Below are positions 46,801 through 64,000 of a stretch of 64,000 nt of DNA, in pieces. The translations under genes were made by a program, and so were the position numbers. The notes below the pieces were generated by a model. The model searched no databases and was not told the origin of the DNA. It saw only the letters and a program-made list of their open reading frames with translations. This DNA comes from Phallusia mammillata (lineage: Eukaryota), in assembly GCA_965637545.1 (NCBI GenBank), contig OZ281496.1:28830001-28894000 (forward strand), in the 5' to 3' direction. Position 1 is the stretch's first letter, and the number at the start of each line of letters is the position of its first letter.

Positions 46801-49800
46801 TGTTTGGTGGTACAGCATTAGGAAGAGCTTCGAACTATGCCCCGGATTATGCCAAAGCCAAAACCTCAGCAGCTCGCATCTTTAAACTTCTGGATCGAAT
46901 CCCACCAATTGATTCTTACAGCCCGGATGGAGACCAATGGGTGAGTCTGCCGAACTTATTAAATACAAATTTACGTGAATAAAATACTTTATGTAAAAAC
47001 CATAGTTTGCATTATGACTCTATGACAATGAGTAAAAAAGCCCTGGGATAGACAGTGAAAAACGTTTTCAACATTGATTTGATCTTAAATGGGTTTAAAC
47101 ATGATATGGTTTAATCGAAAAGTAAGGAAATCATGTTTGTAATGCGGGACTTGTGTGTTAAAGACACGCGTAAATAAATTGTAGTGCATTTCTACTAACA
47201 ATGCTCCTGAGGTCGTTTTATCATTTGCTATATGTATATCTAAACTACATGTTCTATAATAAGTATTGTTTCTTTGCAGAGCAACTTCTGCGGGGACATC
47301 GTGTTCAAAGACTGCCTTTTCACTTACCCGACGCGTCCCGACATAACAGTTCTAAGAGGCTTGAACGTCTCCATCAAACCTGGTCAGACTTTGGCGCTGG
47401 TGGGACAGAGCGGGTGCGGTAAAAGTACCAGCGTTCAGCTACTGGAGCGGTTTTACGATCCGGACGAAGGTCAAGTGGTAAGACCAATTGTGATTTTTTT
47501 TTAGTTTTCTTTAGTATTGTATAAAACATCAAGCCAATAAATTATCCCACTTTATCTGTGCGATACCTTAACTCGGCATAAACCACAGAGGAAACTGTCT
47601 CACAATAGACAAGCAACTGCTGGGGGAACCAAAGTGGCTCAGTGTCACGGTATTAATGCAAAAGTATGGAGCCAATAAATGATAAGAAGACAGTGCACAC
47701 TGTTTCGACCTATAAGGTCTCTTATATTCGCTCGATGCTTCTACAATGATACTATGACACTGAATCGACTTTACTTTGGTTCCCAAGCAGTTACTTGGTC
47801 ACTATTTTTTATTTGTTTAGCATTTATTCAGAGACGAAGTGTTGTGTATTTAATTGTTATATATTTTGTTGGTTTAAGGCAGTTTGCAAGTTGCCTATAA
47901 TGAAATGAAACTTCACAGGGTTGTATATTGGCGTATGTTTTATTTTAAACCTTTGTTATTTGTTCAGTTTGTGGACGGTCATGATACCAAGCAAACCAAC
48001 GTCTCATTTCTACGAAGCAAAATCGGAATCGTATCGCAGGAACCGGTTCTTTTTGGTGGATCGGTGCGCGATAATATCGTGTATGGCGATAATTCCCGTA
48101 TCGTTCCAGAGGAAGACGTAGAGAGAGCAGCAAAGCTCGCCAACATGCATGAGTTCATTCTTGCTTTGAAAGATGTAAGTCACGCTGCAATTTTACAAAA
48201 AATATTTCTTTAATTGAGTTCCTACTGGTGCTATTGAGTATGTCGGAGTAACCAAAAGATTACTCACGTATTCATTTGTTACCAATTGAAATGTCTGTGT
48301 TGTCTGCTTGATTTATCAAATTTACAAAGATATTCTTTCCTTTTAATATTGCCCTTGAGGAAAATCTGGTTCAGCTTTATGGCATAAGCTTTGCACAATA
48401 CAATGTTCCATGTCTAAGCGTTCGTCGTTTACGACAAATCTGAAATTGCAACGACTTGATTCTTTTGTAACAAGTAATAAGAACACCGGTTATTCTTATG
48501 AATAAAACTGGACGTTTTTTGGATTTTTGTTTATATACAATATAACAGCATGAAGAGAGAAATATTCTATCAAACGTTTTAATCTCAGGGTTATGAGACG
48601 AGTGTTGGTGACAAAGGCGACCAGTTATCAAGAGGGCAGAAGCAGAGGGTTGCTATAGCAAGAGCTCTCGTAAGAAATCCGAGGATTCTTCTTCTTGATG
48701 AAGCTACTTCCGCTCTTGACACAGGTAATATTGCAACAAAAACAAATTCGTATTATTTCGATGTTTGTATTTCTTTGAAAATGCGCAATGCTGCAAACTT
48801 TCCATATCTAAGTTGCAATGTATATTGAATTATTGTGTACAGCCGTTAACGCGCTAAAATGATTTGTAGTTAGGGTCGTTTTTTGGCCCTAAAATATATG
48901 GCCGGTCCACAATTTTGGGGCACTTTACATATACCTTGTATCCTAACTGTCCAAATGCTACACTAGTAATGCCGCTAAACCAGTATGTTAAATAAGCTTT
49001 CTAATCTGTCTTATCTTGTTGGTTTGGGGTCGGGTTCATGCTAAAGATATAAGACCGATTTGCAACACTGTACACTAGTAGGCTATAACCATTGAAACAG
49101 TGTGTTAGTTGTGTTTACCAATCTAGTTAACATTCTAACTTTGTACCCTAATTATCCAGATGGTTCACTAGTATTACTGCTAAACCAGTGTGTTAACTCA
49201 GTTTTCTAATCTTGTTGGCTTAAAGTCGGGATTTTGCTAAAGATACAGGGACTGTACACTAGTATAGACATTAAAACAGTGTGTTAGTTCTGCTTTCCAA
49301 TCTAGTTAACATTAAAATCTTGTATAATATTGTTTAGAGAGTGAGCAGATTGTGCAGGAAGCCTTGGACCGGGCGAGAGAGGGACGTACTTGTGTCGTCA
49401 TCGCACACAGACTTTCAACAATCCGCAACGCTGACAAAATCGCCGTGATATCACAAGGTAATATAATACTCACTCAGGGGTTCTTAACCTGGCGTACACC
49501 AAAGCAGGGAGTTTGAAATAGGGTTTCAACACAAAGGCTCTTTTGGCTTTTAGGGAAAGTTTTAGTATGGATAATATACACATTATTGAATAATATACAC
49601 CGAACCCCATTGGTTATGTAAAAAGCAGTAAAATTAAATTGAAGGATTCCTGTCAGTTTATACTTTTTTTTTGACAGTGTTAAGGGGTTCTAGCACCGAA
49701 ATGATTAAAAACCACTTTACGTTAAATGACCTTTTACCGACCCTACTAAAATATAGATTGTGCCTTCAATGCGTGTATGATGAAGTGCTTTTGTTGTTTT

Positions 49801-50247
49801 TCCAGTGGTAGCTCAATGTAGAGCTCCTATAGTATAGTGTTAGGTTAAGTAATACATTTTGTCGCGTATTATTAGTTTTTGTTTAAAATGCAAATACATT
49901 TGAGAGCTGTTAGATACATTGTAATGTCAAAACGTATGCCTCCATTGGCTTTTGTTCCTTAACCTAAATAGCGGAAAAGTCAAGTTGGCCCATGAGGCAT
50001 GTCTTGGGACTGTATTGTTTGTCGAAACAGTTGAATTTTGTTCTAATTCCAGACTGCAGCAGGTTGTTATCAACTGACACACTTGTCAAATCGTCTCTGT
50101 CACTTTGAAATGTTTAAGAATTGTGAATTATAACTTATGCATTTTGCTTGTTTAGGCCAAGTGATTGAACAAGGAACCCACGAGGAACTTATGGATTTGG
50201 AAGCAGCTTATTACAAGCTTATCACTACCAACGCTTCCCTAAGTTGA
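31837..50247 (+). CDS. ABCB11: Full-length ABCB transporter, ABCB11/BSEP-like, about 32 coding exons
   Basis: TMD-NBD-TMD-NBD order is continuous across exons. NBD1: [26 protein letters not shown]2: [33 protein letters not shown]-type rather than P-gp-type diagnostics (recalled sequences): LSRG signature, non-E Walker B in NBD1, [38 protein letters not shown]-terminus AYYKLITT. The three N-terminal exons (31837-31936, 32394-32455, 33417-33466) are inferred from frame continuity and are less certain. Confidence 0.82.
36506..36549 (+). pseudogene. Degenerate duplicate of the start of the next ABCB exon (36691-36824), with an in-frame TGA
   Basis: TTAG|GTTGGAAACTGAGCTCTCGCCTCAACGAGACAGACT versus the true TTAG|GTTGGAAACTGGGTGCTTGCCTCAACGAGACAGACT; TGG changed to TGA at 36515-36517; flanking intron pieces are also duplicated. 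Confidence 0.8.
43390..43570. promoter_or_regulatory. Cluster of CRE-like TGACGTCA palindromes in an ABCB intron
   Basis: Perfect TGACGTCA at 43390, 43477, 43498 and 43545, plus TACGTCA at ~43528 and ~43564, within a decayed tandem repeat. Function not shown. Confidence 0.4.
45744..45954. mobile_element. hAT-type MITE (211 bp) in an ABCB intron
   Basis: Terminal inverted repeats CAGTGGTTCCTAACC / GGTTGGGAACCACTG; 8-bp target-site duplication CTGTATTG (45736-45743, 45955-45962). Confidence 0.9.
48955..49325. repeat. ~190-bp tandem duplication in an ABCB intron
   Basis: GCTAAACCAGT.TGTTAA...TCTTGTTGG...GCTAAAGATA...ACTGTACACTAGTA...AAACAGTGTGTTAGTT...CCAATCTAGTTAACATT is present twice. Confidence 0.75.
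49475..49717. mobile_element. Decayed hAT-type MITE (same terminal-repeat family as 23115); further partial ends at 14486 and 25728
   Basis: Left end CAGGGGTTCTTAACC; degenerate right end ATTAAAAACCACTT; target-site duplication not recognisable. Confidence 0.5.
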
Positions 50248-51785
50248 GCTGATGTACAGGGTTCAAAACTACCTAAATATTTTATCCTGCGTCCCGCCAT
50301 AAAAGCAGGAAACTGCCGACTGACAGGAACAACTTTTATTATATGTAAGTGCCAATGGAAATTGAAAACGGCACCGACCAACTCTCACAATGTGTGGATT
50401 TTGTTTTGCTTTACACTTCACAGTTTTGTGTGTGTTTTGTTTCTGCAAGCCTTTTATAAATTTCCTTGAAATGTTTTAATATAAGATTGTCTCGACTAAA
50501 GCATTTAAATGTACAAAACAATAAAGGTAATTATATAAACTTTTTTTTACTCTTTTTTTTGGTATTCGGAAATAGAAAAATACATTTTTTTCTTCCCTAA
50601 ATTGGGGCCAATATTTATGTCGATAATTTATCTAAGGCCATTGTTTCTGTGTATTACACATTGTGTGTTATTCACGCAACGTCTTGTATGTGTGTGCGTG
50701 TGTGTGTTTAAAGTATCACTGTTTTTATTGTTGTATCAACTAATTATTTGTTATCCTATTTTTATTTTATTTTTTTAATTCCTTAATCTTCGTTTAATTC
50801 CTTGTTCTGTGAGATAATGTTATCGTACGTGACATTAAAAGTTGACAAATTAGTACCAATGATAATTTGATAAGTTTAAGTCGGATACATCATTATTATT
50901 GGAAAAGTTTAAATTGTTTGACCCTAAACTTGACGTTTATGGACACTGAAAATCCTCATTTTCCAGTGCTAAGAAATTCAAATCACACCTTTCATAATTA
51001 AATATATACTGGGTAAAATGCCTGAAAAAAAATTATATTTGATGTTTTATATTTCGCAAAGCTAAAAACGGGAGCAGGATTACGTTGATTTTTTAATAGT
51101 CATGTTTTCGATTCCGATTTAAACGGATAAGCGGTGTCCAGTAGTAGGCCGTAGACGTCTAGAACGCTTTTAAAATCGCAACGTTTCGGGACAACGGTTC
51201 GTTCCGGTATGAAACACTGGTAGCAACAACCTTGCAATCTGTAAAAGATTTAGCATTATGTTAGAAAGTTTGCCAGGTAAAGCGTCGTCATGGAAATTTC
51301 TCCAGTATATGTTACCAACTGTTATAACATTGTATGCTTTTTTGAAACAAAAAAGGAAATATCCTTTCAATTTCAAACAATCTGCTATTGTTTGCAACGC
51401 TCCAGTTCGGCTTTCGTCACTTCCACTAACAGCCACAAAGTTGTGAAAGGCACGGTTGACGTTGTGACGTCATGCAGGTTTCCTGCCTGTTTCGACGAGT
51501 CAGACCATGGGTTTATGACGTCAAATTCGTAGTTTCAATAAGATTTTCGACTGTAGACCTATTAGGTTTAGTTTTCAAGGTTTTGTTTAATTGCAGTTTA
51601 GCTCAAGCAGATTTTGGAATTGAAGTTGGTCCCACAGTCACAATCACCAAGTTACTTGACCTGGATTGGACCACCATACAAAGTTATATTCTCGAAACAA
51701 ACTCGAATCAGAATTTTATTAGCGAAGATATAAAGATAGCCTGATAGTAAAACAAAACAGTCAGATATAGCAAGGTAAAAACGGT

Positions 51786-54416
51786 ATGATGTTGTTCGTA
51801 AGCTGTTTGAAAATCTGCTTCACATTGGTGACCATCTTACGAATTGTCGAAGCACTGGAAGGTAACTGCTCTACATATTTTGTGGTCAAACAATTTCAAA
51901 TTCATGAGTGTAATAAAATTTAACAAAACTAAACCGAAGCTGTCTTATATTAGCCACATGCGACACAAAACTGTCGGATTTGAAACACTCTATCACAAAA
52001 GTAATTTGTCCCGGCGGCTGTTGGATGCAACATTCAGATTTATGTGGGACTGACGACTACGCCAGAGGTCCTCTGTGTCTTGCTGCGATGCACACTGGAC
52101 TGATTGACAGTAAGTCGATTTTAACTTGTAAATTAGTACATGTTTCGCGCATATTGCCACTAACAGGCATTTGTTGGCGTTTAACAAGTTTAATGGCTGT
52201 CCAACTTTGAAGTACGATTGGTTCGCGTGGTACTCCATCCAATAACAAATGACGTTTAATAAACCAAACATCTCAAAGCAATCAATAAATGCAATAATGC
52301 TCATCAATAAATACAATAATGCTTTTTCGTGTTCAAACTGAAAGTTTTTGTCAAAAAGATTTTTTTTATTCTGAATAGCCAAGCACACCTGATGTTTGAC
52401 ACAGTTTATAGAAGCAACTGTTGTAGATAACGTTGTTGCAATTATCATGTTTAGAAGAGGGAGGATATTTTGAGGTGTTTCAAAGCAATCCATTACCGAA
52501 GTACACAGGCACGACAAGATACGGCGTGACCAGCGAATCATGCGGTTCTGCTATATTCACTTACTCATTTCAAAGTATGACGCGGTCGTTTATTGCTCAG
52601 CCAATCTGAAAAACTATAACTCACTTCTTATGTGTAGTGAAATGCAGCACAAAGGGAAATTCTGAATTTTCAGTGACTGATGTTGATTGTCCTTCCGGTT
52701 GTCGTCCTAACTACGTGTGTGGGACAAATTTCTACAACAGCAATTCGTCTGTATGTGCAGCTGCTATGCACGCTGGGATTTTGAAAGGTCTGGTTCATTT
52801 GGCTTGCCTATAATAACACAACATCTAGAAAAATGCTGTTTTTTTGCAGAAAACGGAGGAGCGGTTACATTTTATTCTGATGAGAAACAAACATCTTATG
52901 TTGGTTCAACAAAAAACGGCGTTTCCAGTCAGTCATGCAACAATTTCCTAAGATCCTTTTCATTTACCAGTAAGTGTGTTAACCTGGCCTAATTTGCTTG
53001 TTCTTTTAGTATAACTTTTCAGGAAACAACGATTGTTTTCGGAATTGTCAAAACGAAGGTAAATGCTTGTCAGGAATTAATGCTGAGTTTTGCTCTTGTG
53101 CGAGTGGAACAGAGGGAGATGATTGTAGAACTGGTGAGAGAAACCTTACATCGAGCCTAGGTTGAAATATACAGCACAGCACACTTGTTACCTACGTATT
53201 ACTGTTTTAGACATCAACGAATGTACACGTGGAACACACAACTGTCATCAACACGCAACTTGTACCAACACGTTGGGTAGTTTCCAATGTTCTTGCAACG
53301 CAAACTACACAGGAAATGGAACTCAGTGTGGTAAGCTAAATTGCAAAACATAAAAGTTTGTTTATAACGTTAAAATCCGCACCACATTCCCTGTTGTGTG
53401 AATTGTTAGGACTTACAAGTTTGACAATTTTCAGAGCCCAACTTTTGCTTTGCTAACGTCGATCTCTGCAAAAATAACGGAATTTGCTTGGACACAAAAA
53501 CAGCATACAACTGCTCTTGTGATGTTTTTCATCAAGGAAAGCATTGTGAGCAAGGTATTTCGAAAGATTTGTGAGAATCTAAAATCCAGATGATTTTTTA
53601 GTAATTATAATATTTGTTTTAGAGATTGACCACATAATTATGACCACAGCAAGGAATTGGGCAAACGCAAGAAAATATTGCCAGTCAATTGGTGGAGATT
53701 TGGCGACCTGGGGAATGAGAAACGCAACTGTTCGCAAGTATGTATTACAGGTTTAGCTTTAAGCATTCGGACGTGGGCTCAATATAAGACTTTTTACCAA
53801 TAATGTTTTCTTTTAAACATTTAAAACCATTTGCCAATCCTTCAACACTTTTTGTATGAGATCCATTTTTTAGTTGAAAAATGGCAGAAAATAGATGCTT
53901 TGTCGTAACCTTTACTTAGTGTTGTATAATTTAAAACTCCTCAACCTGAATGAATCAACACTACTGTCCATTGAGCCTCATCAACAACTCAGATAAATCA
54001 AAATTTAGTTGCCACGAAATGTGTTTAATTGTATGCCAAGCACCATATCGTTGATTTTGTTTGTTGCTGTAAGTGTAACCTTATTATGACCACAAGCAAT
54101 TTGCATTGTGGCTCTGACAAACAAGTAGGCTTATAAGAAACCACTATATTCAAGCTCGATCATTGAAAATGTGCTGCGCCCCGGTCCACCATCAGGTTAC
54201 TGGATTGGCATGTCTGACCTCGACCAAGAAGGAGTTTGGAAATATGTTGATGGCGTTGCTGTTACAACCAAAAATACCGATTTTTCATCCGGCCAACCTG
54301 ACGACTACGGTTCAGCACAAGATTGTGCATGGTTGTATCTAAAATTTAACTACAAGATGGACGATGGTTGGTGTACACGATATGAACTCGCCATCTGTGA
54401 GAGAATCTTGAACTAG
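51786..54416 (+). CDS. Secreted LCCL-LCCL-EGF-cbEGF-EGF-C-type lectin, copy A (10 exons, 449 aa)
   Basis: Exons 51786-51861, 51954-52109, 52455-52574, 52638-52787, 52850-52969, 53023-53133, 53211-53330, 53435-53554, 53623-53737, 54155-54416 give an open 1350-nt frame. Signal peptide MMLFVSCLKICFTLVTILRIVEA; LCCL motifs CPGGC..CGT..Y..LCLAAMHTG..GG and CPSGC..VCGT..Y..SSVCAAAMHAG..GG..NGVSS; DINEC calcium-binding EGF; lectin domain with WIG, QPD and MDD. No TM segment. Confidence 0.9.
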
Positions 54417-55164
54417 TAGCAGCAAACCATGCATTTGTTTTGAACATTTTATTTGTTAGCCTCTACCAAATATCATTTTGTGTAAAGTTGCTGAAGTGAC
54501 ATAAAAAAAATTAACACATATATTTGTAACTGCATTTTAATCGGTGTTTTGTGCTTTTGCTTTTTTTTGTATAATCATCGATGATCAATATGTGCAAGTA
54601 AAATTTTCTACATAGTTTTTTTCCTGTGCACTGTTTTGATTGGCTAGTGTTGCGGTCAAAAACTTCGGGAGAAAATACAGACTATGTTCCGAAGACAAAC
54701 GCGTTTCGTGTTTCGGGTAATGGATTTTGGGCAAAATATCCACAAAAAATGAGGTACCAAGTAGTGAATGCTGCAGTGTTTCTCCTTGTTTAATTTTTGA
54801 TTTTATTCCCAGCAGTTTGGAACATCTTGATTTGCCATGGCAGTATAAAGCGAAGCTATTAAAACAGAATATTCACTGTCAAAGAGTTATCTAAAAACAG
54901 ATCAGCGGCGTCACAAGGTACTCACATTACATGTGTGTATAGTTATAGTGCATGTGTATGTAGTGCCTCGTAGCACTGTTAAAGCGAACTTCTGGTTGTC
55001 ATTATTGCTCTTTTTAAGAAAATTCTGGTTTGTCATTCTCATTATTTTTAAAAAAATTATCAACTCTTCAATTTTTTTGCTAGCGTTTCAAAACTTTAAA
55101 ATATCTTCAGTCTTTCTATTTGCACCATTGACTTGCAAACCATCTTGCTGTGTCAATAATGCTT

Positions 55165-55330
55165 ACATTGAAGGCGCCACACCGAATCAGCCGGTCACCA
55201 GGCGTTCACCACCATATGGCAATGCGTAGGCTAAAAAAATCTAGCCCTCGGTGGGATTCGAACCCATGACAGGAGTTTTTCCGGGACTTGCGTCATACCA
55301 ACTGAGCGACGCAGGCTCAGTGGAGAATCC
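55165..55330 (-). mobile_element. tRNA-derived SINE; head at 55243-55316
   Basis: Minus strand GCCTGCGTCGCTCAGTTGGTATGACGC...GGGTTCGAATCCCACCGAGGGC has A-box, B-box and a partial acceptor stem, but no valid anticodon arm. It is followed by a body shared with copies at ~55405-55590, ~61812-62010 and ~22258-22355. Confidence 0.75.
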
Positions 55331-56769
55331 GCCGAAAGTCGAATCACAAGCACCGTTGCCTGCCTCGTATGCTGCACATGTCAACTTTGTAATATGGGAT
55401 CGCAAGATTGACCAGTATCGGTTAATATGAACATAAATTCATAACTGGGACCAGCCCTGAAGCGTCAATATGACACTCACATATACCAATCACAGTACGC
55501 CAGGCCGATTGAAGGCGTTATACCGAATCAGCCGGTCACCAAGCATTCACCACCATATGGCAAGGCTAGCCTGCGGTGGGTTTGGGTACCTATTGTTAAT
55601 ATTCGTCATTTTTATGTTACTTTTACCTAGCTGCTCTTAAAAGTGTTGGTCATGAAAACACTGATCAGATGCTTGGAAGCACAATTAATTACATGCAGCC
55701 AAACCGGCAACCTTTGACCCAATTGGCCTTCCAGCAGACTTTTTTCTTACGTTTTAGCTGCAGGCAGGAGATCTGCCAAAGGTGCTCACTCAGTTCCAAC
55801 TTACATTCATTTGTTCCGCAGTGACCCAGAGAGCTGTAGTAACCTCTTTAGTGTGTTGAAAGGTTATGTTTGCTGATGTTTTTAGATAGTTCGTTTTTAT
55901 CTACCCAGTAAGCTGCTATAACTACTTATCTGTACATACTTAATCTACCTTCGGGCGTTGTAGTCCTAATGTAACCCTGGATATTATGTTTCTACATACG
56001 CTGCAACTTACTGTTGTGATAAGGTTCTGTAGTCTGATGAAATGATGTATGTAATGTTTCTGTTCCCTGCAAGCTGTTCTGTTTGGATATGGAAACGGAT
56101 GTTATTTAAAGCAATCTAAAACTAAAAGTAAGAAATGTAAAATAAAATTGTACTTAAAAGTAGGTTAGAAACTATATCCTTGGTATTTACAACTAAATGG
56201 AATAGGCTACTTGTATTTATAAAACGTTAATGGAGTCGTGTAAACTAAATAATTTGGTGTTATTTAGGATATTGATTTCATAAACAATACTGAGTCGATT
56301 GACTGGTTAACACGTCGTTGTTTTGTTTTTGTAACATTTTTCAAGCAGTAGATTTCTTTTTTGCGGTTAATCGCCTTAGCTTACACCCAAATTTATTTTC
56401 AGTTTATGGGTTTAAATATAAGTAATGTGCACAAACAGACATTTTTTCATACTTACAAATTAGATAAAAAGTTTTTTGGTGCAAAGTGCATAGCCTGTTT
56501 GGTAGCTTGTCTTTGAGTATAGCGTTTTTAATATACATTACGAATTGTGGGTTCGAATTGCTTGTGTTTTTTTATGCACTTGATGGCGCTGCAAATTGAT
56601 TTAAAAGTCGCGGTTGAAGCTTGAAATAAGAAACACGGGTTAATTATATGGCAAAAAATAGTGGGATTGAATACATGGAGTCTGCATTTCACCTAAATAT
56701 AATAAACCTTTAGAACTCTAGTTACGTATGTTAGCAGGACACGAATATGCCAATTTAACGCTCGGGTCA

Positions 56770-56862
56770 GTTTGTGCAACTGCTCGGCCGAGCACCGAGC
56801 ATTAAAAACAGCGATGCTCGATACCGAGTACTCGGGTTCTAGCTCGGCTCGGCCTATCCCTA
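56770..56862. mobile_element. Probable terminal fragment of a non-autonomous DNA element
   Basis: Dense GCTCGG/CCGAGC repeats ending CTCGGCCTATCCCTA, in the unique spacer between the lectin copies; partner end not found. Confidence 0.4.
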
Positions 56863-57599
56863 TTAACTTTGTAACATGGTTTTATGTATTATTTCATGGT
56901 GAAAGTATTAGGTAATGCCATGCTAGAGGTCACCTCGGTTGTTGCTTGGCAACTAGAAGGCTACTTGCCTGATACTTACATTATTTTTGCTGCAAACGTT
57001 ATATGTGCACATATTTATTTGAGACAAGGTTGTCTGGAGCCAATTTTGCCTGGCCCAAAATTGCTACATTTGAAAAAGTGGAAACCCAGAAATACACAAC
57101 ACTGGGCGCACGAATTGCTTATTAGCTACTCCTCCGCAAACAACCTCTTGACTAAGCTGTTCTCAACGGAACTAGTCATTATGTCACCACCATAATGGCT
57201 ACCTAAGAGGCTATTTGCAATCAGCTTATTGCTTGCATGCATGTGATAAGCTAACATGTAGTGTTGTTCAATTCGAAACGCTAAGATAGAAATATTTTGT
57301 GACATTGTGTGCACGCTAACGGCACACAGCTTGTTTAATTAGAATGTATATTAGCAAGGCACCGGCAAAATTGCTTCATTAGTTAGGTAAAAAGCTTTAA
57401 AGTACATGATCAAAGTGTGATTTTATAACAGTGCTTTGATTGATAGGTAATAATATTGTCATTTTGACGTTTGCGAAACCTATTTTATTTGTTATTGCAG
57501 CAAAGTAATAAATGAAAGTACTTTACAAAATTATTCAATGTATTAACTGCATGTCTTTAGAACAGCTGTGATAACCGCACCTGAAACTTGAATTGCATA

Positions 57600-60500
57600 A
57601 TGCCTTCACCGACATATCGAATTCTTACTTATCTTTTTCTGATGAATGTGCTGCATTTTCAGAGATGTACGTCAATGCAAGGTGATCTCATACTTAGGTA
57701 AAGTGTTTGTAGGAATATTTTTTAAGCGAAATCATCAATCAATGCATTTAAACTTTTGAATAAATTTGCAGTACTTTATATGTTAGTGTGTTGTAGTTGG
57801 TAAGTTACTAAACTGTGATTGACATTCGTTGTAAACAAAATAAAGTCTGGGGAGACAGTGCAGCCATGTAACAAGTCACTTCCTCATGAGTTGTTTCACG
57901 GATTCGCACTTACCTGTCTTCCGCCACCTTTCTTGCTACCCTTGACGCGTCTTTGCTCTAAAAGTCTCAAATATTTTAGCACAGTGCTGCGTGTGTCTTA
58001 GTGTTCTGGAAAATAACCCACTGACAAAACATCTTGTGTACAAAAACCAAATCAGGTCCATAAAAATCCTCTAATTTATTATTTGACTTTTTACTTAGCC
58101 ACGTGCGATACAAAACTGTCGGATTTAAAACACTCGATCACAAAAGTGATTTGTCCTGGCGGCTGTTGGATGCAACATTCAGATTTATGTGGGTCTGACG
58201 ACTACGCCAGAGGTCCTCTGTGTCTTGCTGCGATGCACGCTGGACTGATTGATAGTAAGTCGATGTTTTATTTATCAAGTGTATTTTATTCTTCCTTAAT
58301 TTTGCCACCACAAGACAGTTTCAATGTTAGCAGTCATTCAAAAGTTTGCTTGGTGCTATATGTTTCATCAACTTAAGACGCCAGTTTGGTGTTTTAATTT
58401 AAAGCATTTTGTCAAGATTATCTTTCACAACTTTTTAACAATTTTGTAGATTTTTATTATCTTTGTTGCAATTATCACGTTTAGAAGAGGGAGGATACTT
58501 TGAGGTGTTTAAAAGTGATCCACTGCCCAAGTACGAAGGCACCAAAAGTTACGGCGTAACCAGCAAATCATGCTTTTCTGCTTCATTCACCTACTCTTTT
58601 CAAAGTAAAACAAATTCGTTCATTGGTAAACAAACAACAAAACTTGTTTGTTGTGTTAAAATGCAGAACACTGTTAAGTTTAGTGAGACGTTTTCCTTCA
58701 AATTAGGCAAATGGGTAAACTCGTTTGTTTTGTTTAGTAAAATGCAGAACACTGTTTAATTCAAAAGTGAGGTGACCACTATTTACTTCAAAGTAACTCA
58801 TGTGTTGTTTGTAGTGAAATGCAGCACAAAGGGAAACTCGGAATTTTCTGTGACTGATGTTGATTGTCCTTCCGGTTGTCGTTCCAACTACGTGTGTGGG
58901 ACAAACCTGTACAACAGCAATTCGTCTGTGTGTGCGGCTGCTATTCACGCTGGGGTTTTGAAAGGTTTGTTAAAAGCACAACCACATTTACACACAACAA
59001 ACAGCATTGTGTTGTTGCAGAAAACGGAGGAACGATTACATTTTATTCTCATGGAGGACAAAGTTCGTCCAAAGGTTCAACCAAAAATGGCGTTTCCACT
59101 CAGCCATGCGACACTTTTCTAAAATCCTTTTCATTTACAAGTAAGGGTGTTAACCATGCCCAATTTGCTTGTTCTTTTAGTATCACTGATTTTTTTAAGG
59201 AAGCAACGATTGTTTTCGGAGTTGTCAAAACGAAGGTAAATGCTTGTCAGGAATCAATGCAGAGTTTTGCTCTTGTGCGAGCGGTACAGAGGGGAAAGAT
59301 TGTGCAATTGGTAAGCCAAGTCACTAACATTGATCCTAGGTTGAAATGCACAACATACTTAGTAGTTTTACTGTTTTAGACATCAACGAATGTACGAGTG
59401 GAACACACAACTGTCATCAATACGCAACTTGTATCAACACAGTGGGTAGTTTTCAATGTTCATGCAACGCAAACTACACAGGAGACGGTGTGGAGTGCGG
59501 TTAGTTTTACATAATTTGTGCTCAATGTGTTGTAACGTTCTGGCGCGCTACAACCTAAAAAATTTCAATTTAATAATTAAATGTTTAATTTGGAATCATT
59601 ACTTTCACAAATTTTAACGAATGTACGAGTGGAACACATGCATGTCATGAAAATGCAACTTGTGTGAACACTTTGGGAAGTTTCCAGTGCATTTGTAATG
59701 CAAATTTCACAGGAGATGGGATGCTCTGCGGTAACATTTTTATATAAGACATTGTGTATGGCGGAAAATTTCTGGACATAGATAGTTATAGTATAAAACT
59801 TTCGCAGAGGCTAATTTTTGCTCGGCCAACGTCGGTCTGTGCAAACACAACGGGACTTGCTCGGACAACACTACAGCCTATAGTTGTTCTTGCGACCTTT
59901 GGCACACTGGAGAGCGTTGTGGGCAAGGTATTATTATAATTTTAAGGCGCGAAGTTGAGTTTTAACTGTACAAAACTATAAATTACTTTCAGGATACCAA
60001 TTTCTACATAAGGGAACATTCGTTACTAAATTCAGCCCCTAACCATTCCTCATGCAGGTTCGGTGCAGACCAAATATGGAATTACATAAAGCCCTGTATT
60101 TTTCGTGTGCTAAACATGCCTAACACATACTAATAACATTTGTCAGTTAAGGGCTGACCCAAACAAAAAACGTACTCTTGGGTTATGGAAGTTGTTGCTG
60201 ACTGAGATCAAACTGGCAATTTATAACCAGGCGCTGTGTAGCATATGTAACCTATCGATGTCTGTGTGGCAGGCACTAATCCTGTCTAAAACATCGACCT
60301 GATGCAGGTTATCGCCCCTGTTTGCGGTCTGGTATCTTTTTTTTGGTTTTAGTAATGATTCGTCACGTTTACAGAAAAAGACCACGTGATTATGACCACC
60401 GCAAGAAATTGGACAGACGCAAGAAAATATTGCCAGTCAATTGGTGGAGATTTGGCGACCTGGGGAATGAGAAACGCAACTGTTCGCAAGTATGTAATAT

Positions 60501-61195
60501 AGGTTTAGCTTTAAGCACTCGGACGTTAACGTGAGGCCAATATAAGACTTTTTAACAATACTCTTTTTCCTTTAAGCATAATGCTTTAAGTAACTTACAG
60601 TTGCTAATATTTAAAAAAAATTATGAGGTCCTTTTTTCAATTCGGATTACCTTACTACTTGTTAGGAAATAGATGCTTTTCACTGTACAGTAACCTTTAC
60701 TTAGTGTTGCATAATTTAAAACTCTCCTCAACCTGATTACTGTCATGTTACCCCTCATCAACCTCTTAAAAAGCCGCAAAATGTGGCTTAATTCACATTG
60801 TATGGTACGCACATCAATGATTTCGTTTATAACTGTAACCTTTTATTATTATGATCTTTAGCAGAATTTGCATTAGAACTAACGCCTTTGTGGCTCTGAC
60901 AAACAAGTAGGCTTAAAAAAAACTATGTTCCAGCTCGATTATTGAAAATGTGCTACGTCCCGCTCCACCGTCAAATTACTGGATTGGCTTGTCCGACCTC
61001 GACCAAGAAGGAGTTTGGAAATATGTTGATGGCGTTGCTGTAACATCCAACAATACCGATTTTTCAACCGGCCAACCTGACAACGGGGGTTCAGGACAAG
61101 ATTGTGGATGGTTGTATTTCAATTATAACTTCCAGATGGACGACGGTTCATGTGCAGATAATGGACTCGCCATCTGTGAGAGAATCTTGAACTAG
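57600..61195 (+). CDS. Secreted LCCL-LCCL-EGF-cbEGF-EGF-C-type lectin, copy B (10 exons, 451 aa, plus a cryptic extra EGF exon)
   Basis: Exons 57600-57681 (inferred leader [27 protein letters not shown]), 58099-58254, 58485-58604, 58815-58964, 59021-59140, 59200-59310, 59380-59499, 59808-59927, 60375-60489, 60934-61195 are in frame. Exon lengths 2-10 are identical to copy A. Exon 1 is less certain. Confidence 0.85.
59611..59730 (+). pseudogene. Extra calcium-binding EGF exon with an AA instead of AG acceptor
   Basis: 120-nt phase 1-1 frame (D)[39 protein letters not shown] with an intact GT donor (59731), but preceded by TTTCACAA. Confidence 0.8.
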
Positions 61196-64000
61196 CTGCA
61201 AACGATTCATTTGTTTTAAACTATTTAGTGGTTGGCCTTAACGAAATATCACTTTGTGTAAAGTCACTGAAGTGACGAAAAATTAAAATCGACACTTGTC
61301 ACCGCATTTTACTTGTATTAGTATTCGCTATTTTGTGCTTGTTGTGCGTTTTTTGTATAATCACCGCTTATTAATATGTGCAAATAAATTTTTCTACAAA
61401 GTTTCCCTGTGTAGGCTACTGTTTTATTGGCTAGTGTTGCGATCTAAACTTTGGGAGAAAAGACTGACTATGTTCGGAAGGCAAATATGTTTGGAGTTTC
61501 GGTTAATCAATTTTAGGCAAAAAGTATATCAACAAAAAATGAGGTTTTTAGTTATGAATGCTGCAGTGTTCTTTCTTATTTTGTTTTTTTAATTATTATT
61601 CCCCGCAGTTTGGAACATATGGCAGTAAAGCGAAGCTAATGAAAAGAATAATTACCGTCAAAGAGTCAATTAAAAACGGATGAGCGTTGTAACACAAATG
61701 AAATAATTTAAACTTTAAGTGGAGGTAGTCACATTACATTGTGTGTATTATAGTGCATGTGTATGCAGTAGCACACTGCCTCATAGTACTGTTAAAGAGA
61801 ACTTCTGGTTGGCAAGATTGACCAGTATCAGTCAAGATGAACATAAATTCATAAGTGGAATCAGCCCTGAAGCGTCAATGCAGACCAGCGATCACGGCAC
61901 ACTCATATATTTCCATTAAAGGCACCATACCGAATCAACCGGTCACCAAGCATTCACCACCATATGGCAAGGCGTAGGCTTGAAAAATCTAGCCTGCGGT
62001 GGGATTCGGATTCCTATTGTAAATGTTTGTCATTATTATGTTACTTTTGTCCAGCTGCTCTCAAAAGTGTTGGCCATGAAAACCCCTCAGATCCGCTGCT
62101 TGGAAGCACAATTCACTACACGCAGCCAAACCGGCAACCTTTGACCCGATTGACCTTCCAGCAGACTTTTTTCTTACGTTGTAGCTGCAGGCAGGAGATC
62201 TGCCAAAGGTGCTCACTCAGTTCTAACTTACATTCATTTGTTCCGCAGTGACCCAGAGAGCTGTAGTAACCTCTTGTGTGTGTTGAAAAGTGATGTTTGA
62301 TCATGTTTTCAGATAGTTTAGCTACCTAGTAAGCTGGAATAACTACTTATCTGTCTTTACTTAATCTAGTTTAGGGTGTCGTAGTCCTAATGTAATCCTG
62401 GATATTATGTTTCTACATATGCTGCAACTTACTGTTGTTATAAGGTTTTGTTGACTGATAAAATGCTGTATGTAATGTTTCTGTTCCCTGCAAGCTGTTC
62501 TGTTTGGATATGGAAACGGATTTTTAAAGCAATCTGGAACTAAAGTAGGAAATTTAATATAACATTTACTTAAACTATGTTAGAAACTATATTTTTGGTG
62601 TTTATAACTAAATGGATACTTGTATTTATAAAACGTGTTGATAGGGTCTATTAAAAACATTTTTCTGCTATTGAGGTTGTTGGTTTTATAAGCAAAACTG
62701 AGTTAATTGACTGATTAGTGCGTGGGATGTTTTATTTTTGTAAATTGTTGCAAGCGGGCGGACAGTTTCTAAAGCAGATTTTCTTTTTTGCAGTTAATCG
62801 CCTTAGCTTACACCCAAATTTATTTTCGGTTTATGGGTTTAAATAAGCTTATAAGTAATGTGCACAAACAGACATTTTTTCATACTTACAAATTAGATCA
62901 AAAGTTTTTTAGTGCAAAGTGCATAGCCTGTTTGGTAGCTTGTCTTTGAGTATAGCGTTTTTAATATACATTACGAATTGTGGGTTTGAATTGCTTGTAT
63001 TTTCTTGCGCTCGTGGGCGCTGCAGATTTATTTAAGAGTCAAGTTTGAAGCTTAAAAATAAGAAACACTGGTTAACGATTTGGCCAAAAAAGTAAGTGGG
63101 ATTGAGTACATGAAGTCTTACCTGCATTTCACGTGACCATTACAAAATCGACAACTACGACGATTATATTTAATATATATGCCCCTCATAAATTAAAACA
63201 GCAGAGATAGCTGTTCATCTATTGTGGTTTAGTAACCTTGTCATTGCGAGGTTTCATCTCAAAGGCTATCGGTGTTGTTTCAAATTACTGACTGAGAGAC
63301 TTGAGAGTTGCGATCTTTGTGTTAGAAACTGTTGAGTATTTTCGCGGAATATGGTTGGTTGATATTAGTACTGACATACGTTTTGTGCAGAAACATAAAG
63401 CTAATTAAGTCTTACTGGTGTCGTTTGATAACCGTTAGTTTTGACGTTTTAAAAGAACTTTTCTCTGGAATCTACTCCAAAACCACTATTAGTCAATTAA
63501 TGTTGACGCAACTTATTTCAAAGTTTATGCAACGTAGCAAGTTTTTTGGTATATTTGCAGATTTACACCACAAACAACAAAGAAGGTAAACCTAAACAAA
63601 TTTTCGGGTCAAGTCAATTTGTTTGTGACATTTCCAACCACCCAAAGTCAATTTGTATGAGGCAACGTTGCGTTGATATTTCCAGTCCTAGTTTATTGTG
63701 GTATTTTTTAAGTTTTGGTATAAATCTAATATGTTTTGGTTTATTACGTTCTTTTAAAACAAATATATAGTGTGGAAAAAAACGGCACAAGGTTTGATAT
63801 TTCTATTGCATTGTAAAAACACACGTTTTTAATGAAGCCATCCAACAAAGTTAAACAACTTAGTTAAAGTAAAGAAAAAAAGTATTCATATGCACTCATT
63901 GCACTGAAATATTTATACAAGCCCAGATGCCTAATTTATTTGCAGTTCCAAAATATGCGACAAAAGACAGGATGATGATAAAGCGGCATTAAATTCACGA

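Follow-up and report, generated by a model that had tools for sequence, protein, structure and literature searches.

Can two neighbouring genes of the ascidian Phallusia mammillata, whose products join LCCL, EGF and lectin modules in a single chain, be regarded as a new kind of recognition protein, and what might such a protein bind? The genes lie on the plus strand of a 64,000-nucleotide stretch of AT-rich animal DNA with short introns (contig OZ281496.1, positions 28,830,001 to 28,894,000), which we call the window and whose first letter is position 1. From ATG to stop codon, gene 1 occupies 51786-54416 and gene 2 occupies 57600-61195. They are intact head-to-tail paralogues that encode proteins of 449 and 451 amino acids (aa), respectively, with 79% identity between them. 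Both proteins share the same domain order: a signal peptide, two LCCL domains, an EGF domain, a calcium-binding EGF domain (cbEGF), a further EGF domain, and a short C-type lectin domain (CTLD) at the C-terminus. We are highly confident of this identity and architecture. A secreted sugar-binding lectin is, with reasonable probability, the product of such genes.

Gene models and domain architecture

Gene 1 has ten coding exons of 76 / 156, 120, 150, 120, 111, 120, 120 / 115 / 262 bases, with GT..AG at all introns and an open frame of 449 codons. Gene 2 also has ten coding exons, to which one exon of the 5' untranslated region (UTR) is added. Seven consecutive module exons are symmetrical (phase 1-1), and eight of the nine coding introns are in phase 1. 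The sole phase-2 coding intron is the one within the CTLD, which separates the exons named here CTLDa and CTLDb.

The gene 1 model was derived from splice sites, the open frame and Pfam matches of each exon. Its first exon (51786-51861), assigned by hydrophobicity and the splice model, encodes the signal peptide and ends in phase 1. LCCL1 (51954-52574) consists of exons 51954-52109 and 52455-52574, which match positions 5-59 and 61-91 of the PF03815 profile, and LCCL2 (52638-52969) consists of exons 52638-52787 and 52850-52969, which match the same profile with E values of 5e-11 and 2e-4. The EGF region (53023-53554) includes EGF1 at 53023-53133, cbEGF2 at 53211-53330 and EGF3 at 53435-53554, recognized by EGF, EGF_3 and EGF_CA matches. 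The CTLD (53623-54416) is encoded by exons 53623-53737 and 54155-54416, matches PF00059, and contains in order a QPD triplet (in QPDD, followed by Tyr), MDD and ICER.

In gene 2, exon 2 (57561-57681) includes the ATG at 57600 and a weak signal peptide and also ends in phase 1. The LCCL region (58099-59140) comprises LCCL1 at 58099-58254 and 58485-58604 and LCCL2 at 58815-58964 and 59021-59140, assigned by homology to gene 1 and by RNA junctions in four runs. It is followed by EGF1 (59200-59310), cbEGF2 (59380-59499) and EGF3 (59808-59927), together spanning 59200-59927, and by the CTLD (60375-61195) in exons 60375-60489 and 60934-61195, where Gly takes the place of an aromatic residue after QPDN.

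Domain scans were made on single exons, with two database proteins described below (P0151 and P0002) as full-length stand-ins. In the single exons, Pfam recognized two LCCL domains (two exons per domain), three EGF domains (one exon each) and Lectin_C (two exons). The LCCL half-domain exons of the window scored 26.3, 17.2, 43 and 22 bits against PF03815. On P0151, which is nearly identical to gene 2 through the body of the protein, the corresponding scores were 104.5 bits for LCCL (in two stretches), 53 for Lectin_C and 41.9 for EGF_CA, and the LCCL match exceeds the Pfam gathering score. The gathering score is likewise exceeded by Lectin_C (PF00059), which scores 59.7 bits on P0002 and, for the last exon by itself, 41.8 bits. 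At the level of motifs, the LCCL core C-x-A-A-x-H-x-G is represented by LCLAAMHTG and VCAAAMHAG, and each LCCL domain has six Cys residues, namely the four canonical ones and one extra pair. The middle EGF matches EGF_CA and EGF_3 and carries the hydroxylation pattern C-x-N-x4-F-x-C, while the CTLD has YWIG[LM] as its WIGL motif and four Cys residues. The mature chains, of which the CTLD is the C-terminal module in a mosaic of 424 residues, contain 34 Cys each (6+6+6+6+6+4), with a mass near 46 kDa and a pI of 5.2-5.5.

The signal peptide of gene 1 is strongly hydrophobic, with a maximum Kyte-Doolittle mean over 19 residues (KD19) of 2.17. Past the N-terminus no hydrophobic span was found in either protein, the maximum KD19 being 0.75. 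These models bear out the preliminary description of the locus as two intact genes, from an ATG at 51786 to a stop at 61195, each with a signal, two LCCL domains, three EGF domains and a lectin domain. Two further points of that description agree with them as well, that is, an almost complete construction from phase-1 exons and the lack of a transmembrane or protease domain, since there is no second hydrophobic span and no trypsin match among the window exons. Rfam and tRNA scans of 48000-64000 returned no match.

Transcription and trans-splicing of gene 2

In each of 16 RNA-like runs, all from a single organism and listed under four studies, about 0.13-0.15 of the sampled words of 51700-61300 were present, as would be expected for one mRNA of this size; no run reached two genes' worth. 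Four runs, one per study, were mapped on 54000-59999, where gene 1 is represented by its last exon alone. All four show the joints 56127>57561, 57681>58099, 58254>58485, 58604>58815, 58964>59021, 59140>59200, 59310>59380 and 59499>59808. Since the contigs are spliced, they originate from RNA, and these junctions confirm the gene 2 model up to EGF3.

The same RNA reveals a non-coding first exon of gene 2 at 56024-56127 (some contigs begin at 55998), attached to exon 2 by the first of the listed joints. In two runs the contig opens with ...ATTCTATTTGA and then runs into the genomic ATAAG, and together these make up the 16-base ascidian spliced leader (SL), as reported for Ciona (PMC1488885). The leader is joined at the AG of 56022-56023, which makes gene 2 SL trans-spliced. 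An in-frame stop codon lies upstream of the ATG at 57600.

For the 3' part of the gene, a single contig in runs X1 and X13 spans EGF2, EGF3, CTLDa, the last exon and the 3'UTR. This contig represents gene 2, as it agrees with all 26 diagnostic letters (26/26) and with the 3'UTR, and it shows only 88% identity to the last exon of gene 1. Transcription, cis-splicing and SL trans-splicing are therefore established for gene 2 alone.

The intergenic repeats at 55160-55600 and 56600-57000 show RNA-contig depth of up to several hundred, with many loose ends and joints on the opposite strand, and a 59-base direct repeat is present at 55167-55225 and 55508-55566. No Rfam or tRNA match was obtained for either region; they probably represent fragments of dispersed mobile elements whose transcripts come from many loci.

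Duplication, exon shuffling and spread of the architecture

The two genes belong to a duplicated unit, in which 51950-56692 aligns with 58095-63132. A copy of the gene 2 leader exon was found downstream of gene 2 at 62412-62544 on the plus strand, with 90% identity and with both the AG acceptor and the GT donor kept. Judged by this similarity, the copy probably starts a third gene, whose coding exons would lie beyond the window end; at the spacing of gene 2, they would begin at about that end. The locus is thus probably a tandem array of three or more genes.

The intron of gene 2 between cbEGF2 and EGF3 contains a fourth, cbEGF-like exon (59617-59730, plus strand) with an open frame and a good GT donor. 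This exon has lost its acceptor AG together with its first codons, and an in-frame stop stands immediately upstream. The exon is skipped in all four mapped runs, with zero depth in the bin 59600-59799. Gene 1 has no counterpart of this dead exon, and its corresponding intron is 104 bases long. Assembly by exon shuffling, as had been proposed for the pair, is well supported by the symmetrical phase-1 exons, by this dead EGF duplicate and by the module changes in two relatives discussed below, namely the seven EGF domains of P0152 and the type II membrane form of P0040. The locus may be regarded as a clean and partly transcribed example of that process, in which one EGF3-CTLD cassette occurs in soluble (LCCL-bearing) and in membrane-anchored versions.

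Across 424 aligned codons, the paralogues show a dS of 0.34 and a dN/dS of 0.30, which indicates that the pair has been under purifying selection. Conservation is uneven along the chain: the LCCL1a, LCCL2a and CTLDa exons are 89-96% identical, while EGF3 (62%) and LCCL2b (67%) have changed most. Of the 78 differences between the paralogues, 14 fall within the last 40 residues of the chain, beginning at QPD; this affects 35% of positions there, compared with 17% elsewhere (Fisher p 0.009). One of these 14 is the Tyr/Gly difference at the position that stacks on galactose in related lectins. The sugar-binding end of the CTLD is thus enriched for change, though it is not the sole fast region.

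The last exon of gene 2 was scanned against 1.84 billion representative proteins, and P0002 was found at 98% identity. A word search from P0002 returned four close relatives only, all of them unreviewed TrEMBL/GenBank entries of Phallusia mammillata: P0151 (A0A6F9D9C0 / CAB3231613), P0002 (A0A6F9D8Y3 / CAB3231614), P0152 (A0A6F9DJP8) and P0040 (A0A6F9DA22). The first two entries, of 454 and 380 aa, respectively, have the same LCCL-LCCL-EGF3-CTLD architecture as the window genes. Their automatic name, 'C-type lectin domain family 4 member F-like', is borrowed from the nearest Ciona protein (XP_004225528) and ignores the LCCL domains.

P0151 is identical to gene 2 at all 285 residues from LCCL1b to CTLDa (seven of the ten coding exons) and at 51 of 52 residues in LCCL1a. 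It then continues into a different last exon (44 of 85 residues identical) with an EPN triplet. In P0002, in turn, the QPD last exon of gene 2 (85 of 87) follows a body whose identity to either window gene reaches only about 82%. The two entries are reciprocal mosaics that switch at a stretch identical in all paralogues, the CTLDa/CTLDb junction. That gene 2 is joined to its QPD exon is supported by the genome as well as by two RNA runs, and exact look-ups of P0151 and P0019 returned no contig. Alternative splicing to the last exon of P0151 was considered and rejected, because no such exon is present in 61195-64000 and because P0002 is the reciprocal mosaic. For the same reasons, P0151 and P0002 are more likely to be chimeras in which assembly has joined gene 2 to a third paralogue, or else recombinant haplotypes.

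The other two relatives show how the modules have been rearranged. P0152 has seven EGF domains and may be 5'-truncated, given that the first residue of its entry is the Met with which LCCL2 begins. P0040 has a cytoplasmic tail and a membrane anchor in place of the signal peptide and LCCL pair. In a second ascidian, genomic contigs of run DRR090687 include EGF-EGF-CTLD and TM-EGF-CTLD exon sets (TM, transmembrane) at about 50% identity. No LCCL exon was found within the limited reach of these contigs, which are too short to show or exclude LCCL. With respect to the intron within the CTLD, the membrane-anchored relative on one of these contigs (L002, 2991-4758) has its CTLD in one exon and no CTLDa/b intron, whereas contigs L003 and L004 retain it.

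Does the architecture extend further? When an LCCL profile built from the window was run on the 150 best CTLD matches, LCCL domains appeared among them only in the Phallusia entries and in three amphioxus giants. Word searches with the LCCL pair retrieved neither LCCL-fibrinogen genes nor an LCCL-CTLD protein from another species; their matches were a Styela protein with seven LCCL domains and unrelated, microbial-looking LCCL proteins. In the searches made, the architecture appears confined to one genus, so far to Phallusia mammillata only. Full-text literature searches returned no paper on the LCCL-LCCL-EGF3-CTLD architecture, and one review on the immunity of tunicates, their lectins included, does not figure in the set of papers that mention both LCCL and ascidians. 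The suggestion that this is not a described family thus holds for the searched literature, but 'new family' is too strong a term for proteins of which unreviewed Phallusia mammillata entries already exist in UniProt and GenBank. The architecture is public yet uncharacterised. It is a domain combination not previously described for C-type lectin proteins, built from ordinary modules. To specialists in the innate immunity of tunicates or amphioxus, a field rich in mosaics of this sort, it comes as no surprise.

The lectin head, its possible role and known systems

When the whole CTLD was used as a query against the PDB, the best solved single-domain match was TC14 (1byf/1tlg), with an E value of 4.2e-12 over residues 11-123 of 125. 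With the last exon as the sole query, TC14 had ranked only 26th (E 1e-5), and the view of the likeness as merely generic, which this rank suggested, was overturned by the whole-domain query. The two domains have in common YCQS.G..L, MR[ND].T, a Gln at the position of Glu193 in MBP-A (mannose-binding protein A), an xDD in place of WND, and an ICE[KR] tail. The resemblance to TC14, which had been noticed from MDD and the ICERILN tail, is therefore real, and the CTLD can be placed in the TC14 subfamily of tunicates.

These residues bear directly on the calcium site. The calcium ligands of TC14 are Glu106, Asn109, Asp127 and Asp128 (PMC3293724), and the same positions are occupied in genes 1 and 2 by Gln, Asp/Asn, Asp and Asp, all with oxygen-bearing side chains. 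Compared with site 2 of MBP-A (EPN/QPD, Glu, WND), QPD is present, but Gln stands in for Glu193 and MDD for WND, a pattern that the sugar-binding TC14 shares. When EPN is changed to QPD, MBP-A binds galactose instead of mannose (PMC3293724). Nearly all members of the tunicate CTLD subfamily carry EPN or EPS, the only ones with QPD being genes 1 and 2 and a collectin-like protein of Clavelina. Since most relatives carry EPN, the QPD of the two genes is a derived feature, and the locus offers a change of triplet from EPN to QPD in a head for which TC14 supplies the structure. The residue after QPD[DN] is Tyr in gene 1 and Gly in gene 2. In CTLDs of the asialoglycoprotein receptor type, a Trp at this position stacks on galactose.

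From these features we infer secretion, sugar specificity, a ligand for the LCCL pair and a biological role as follows. The protein would be exported through its N-terminal signal peptide. The first residue of the triplet, the residue after the triplet and both Asp of xDD would serve as calcium ligands in the CTLD, and the QPD head would most likely bind terminal Gal/GalNAc-type glycans in a calcium-dependent manner. The three EGF domains, with the calcium-binding one in the middle, may act as a stiff spacer between this head and the N-terminal LCCL pair, which would offer another binding surface, distinct from that of the head. By analogy with CRISPLD2, whose two LCCL domains are accompanied by reported binding of lipopolysaccharide (LPS) (PMC3683062), and with cochlin, whose cleaved LCCL domain is active in antibacterial innate immunity (PMC7526977) and which as a matrix protein binds sulphated glycosaminoglycans (PMC9987951), the pair could bind LPS, bacterial surfaces or sulphated glycans. 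In that case the whole protein would link a glycan with a second target, as an agglutinin, an opsonin or a matrix cross-linker. We favour, with fair though far from full confidence, a bridging lectin of galactose type that is secreted, depends on calcium and has a further binding module in its LCCL pair.

Several observations weigh against this assignment. The signal peptide of gene 2 is weak (KD19 max 0.93), and the leader exon of gene 2 holds an upstream open reading frame of 25 codons that starts MMYVMFLF. Gene 1 is without RNA support, the best RNA-like runs (0.14-0.15 of words) amounting to one gene's worth, and no database protein in the word search from P0002 matches gene 1. TC14 binds galactose with an EPS triplet, which makes the triplet an imperfect guide in this subfamily, and the TC14 family acts in budding and in the control of cell growth, not in defence (PMC3293724).

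The last of these points concerns the biological role. A pattern-recognition or opsonin function would be an extrapolation from the modules. Immune recognition is plausible, but as the main role it is a tentative proposal. Because gene 2 seems to be steadily expressed and TC14-3 exerts growth control, we give much the same weight to a role in matrix or development. Under the latter explanation, the proteins would be components of matrix, tunic, egg coat or developmental signalling rather than immune sensors; the LCCL pair and the cbEGF would anchor them in the extracellular matrix, and the TC14-like head would cross-link galactosylated glycans of the matrix or of cell surfaces during development. 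The gene 2 mRNA was assembled in all 16 RNA-like runs (16/16) from the four studies, which looks steady and not induced, and cbEGF repeats are typical of matrix proteins. Precedents are found in cochlin, a matrix protein that binds sulphated glycosaminoglycans (PMC9987951), in TC14-3, a growth-regulating humoral factor in budding (PMC3293724), and in flatworm adhesive-organ proteins, which hold LCCL, EGF and CTLD modules (PMC6745481). However, the tandem duplication, the faster change in the sugar-binding loop and the EPN/QPD switch are more typical of recognition molecules than of matrix proteins with a structural task. A matrix or developmental function is a strong competitor, although as the main role it is doubtful too.

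A somewhat less probable alternative concerns gene 1, which might be a silent or decaying duplicate, with only gene 2 and the further copies functional. Besides having no supporting RNA contig or database cDNA, gene 1 has a first exon unrelated to that of gene 2 and does not have the shared leader exon. Nevertheless, its frame of 449 codons is intact with canonical splice sites throughout, its signal peptide is strong, the overall dN/dS is 0.30, and Tyr is kept at the galactose-stacking position; moreover, the mapped stretch of 6,000 bases (54000-59999) covered only its last exon. We consider loss of function in gene 1 unlikely.

The weakest alternative, that the head binds a protein or another non-sugar ligand and that QPD is uninformative, draws on the replacement of WND by MDD and of the MBP-A Glu193 equivalent by Gln, on an Ala at that position in relatives and on the missing aromatic after QPD in gene 2, but it is very improbable, as TC14, a solved calcium-dependent galactose lectin, has the same Gln and xDD and all four TC14 ligand positions bear oxygen in both genes.

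Returning to the bridging lectin, a bolder version of it sees the array as a diversifying recognition system of Phallusia, in which a constant LCCL-LCCL-EGF stalk carries interchangeable head exons of TC14 type. The heads, with QPD or EPN and with or without the galactose-stacking aromatic, would be exchanged at the conserved CTLD intron; the mosaics P0151 and P0002 would be real recombinant haplotypes or transcripts, not assembly errors; and the soluble forms would be partnered by the membrane-bound EGF3-CTLD cassette. We regard this as improbable. Tunicates are the sister group of vertebrates and depend on innate recognition, and lineage-specific lectin designs among them illustrate the way in which old modules are assembled into new sensors or matrix linkers. 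For LCCL domains, whose ligands are poorly defined, the locus offers a tractable partner context.

Among known systems, Limulus Factor C is also an extracellular mosaic of EGF, LCCL and C-type lectin domains (PMC514892). It differs by its Sushi repeats, its serine protease domain, its single LCCL domain and its domain order; no Sushi or trypsin match was found in any window exon or in P0151, P0002 or P0152, and nothing points to a shared origin of the architecture as a whole. LPS binding by Factor C resides in its N-terminal region, not in the LCCL or lectin domain. The analogy with its LPS sensing, which the preliminary description had drawn, is for this reason weak. CRISPLD1/2 (LGL1) and cochlin are likewise secreted LCCL proteins, with a tandem LCCL pair in CRISPLD. 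In contrast to the window proteins, they pair LCCL with CAP or vWA domains and have neither EGF domains nor a CTLD; no CAP/SCP match was obtained in the window exons or P0151, and here the LCCL pair directly follows the signal peptide. Nor do the proteins follow the plan of collectins or selectins, as collagen, Sushi and membrane-spanning segments are absent from them and the CTLD lies C-terminal to the EGF domains.

The amphioxus giants annotated as 'lymphocyte antigen 75-like / MRC1' (P0064, P0141 and P0014) also combine CTLD with LCCL. However, with 2,500-2,900 aa, 12-13 CTLDs, F5/8C, SUEL and pentraxin domains and one internal LCCL, their design is unrelated. The nearest Ciona CTLD (XP_004225528, P0082) belongs to a type II membrane protein with a coiled-coil neck and an EPS triplet and without LCCL. 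P0040 of Phallusia shares the EGF-cbEGF-EGF-CTLD cassette with the window proteins at 59-64% identity but is of type II membrane form, without LCCL. The head itself is closest to TC14 of Polyandrocarpa misakiensis, a short-form CTLD with four Cys residues and calcium-dependent galactose binding. TC14 is a free dimeric CTLD of 14 kDa with an EPS triplet, whereas here the CTLD heads a 46 kDa mosaic and carries QPD, and the TC14 dimer contacts Ala61 and Phe65 are replaced by Ser and Leu. The closest counterparts of the full architecture are the two database entries of the same species, of which A0A6F9D9C0 differs from gene 2 by its EPN-type last exon and A0A6F9D8Y3 by the body of a third paralogue.

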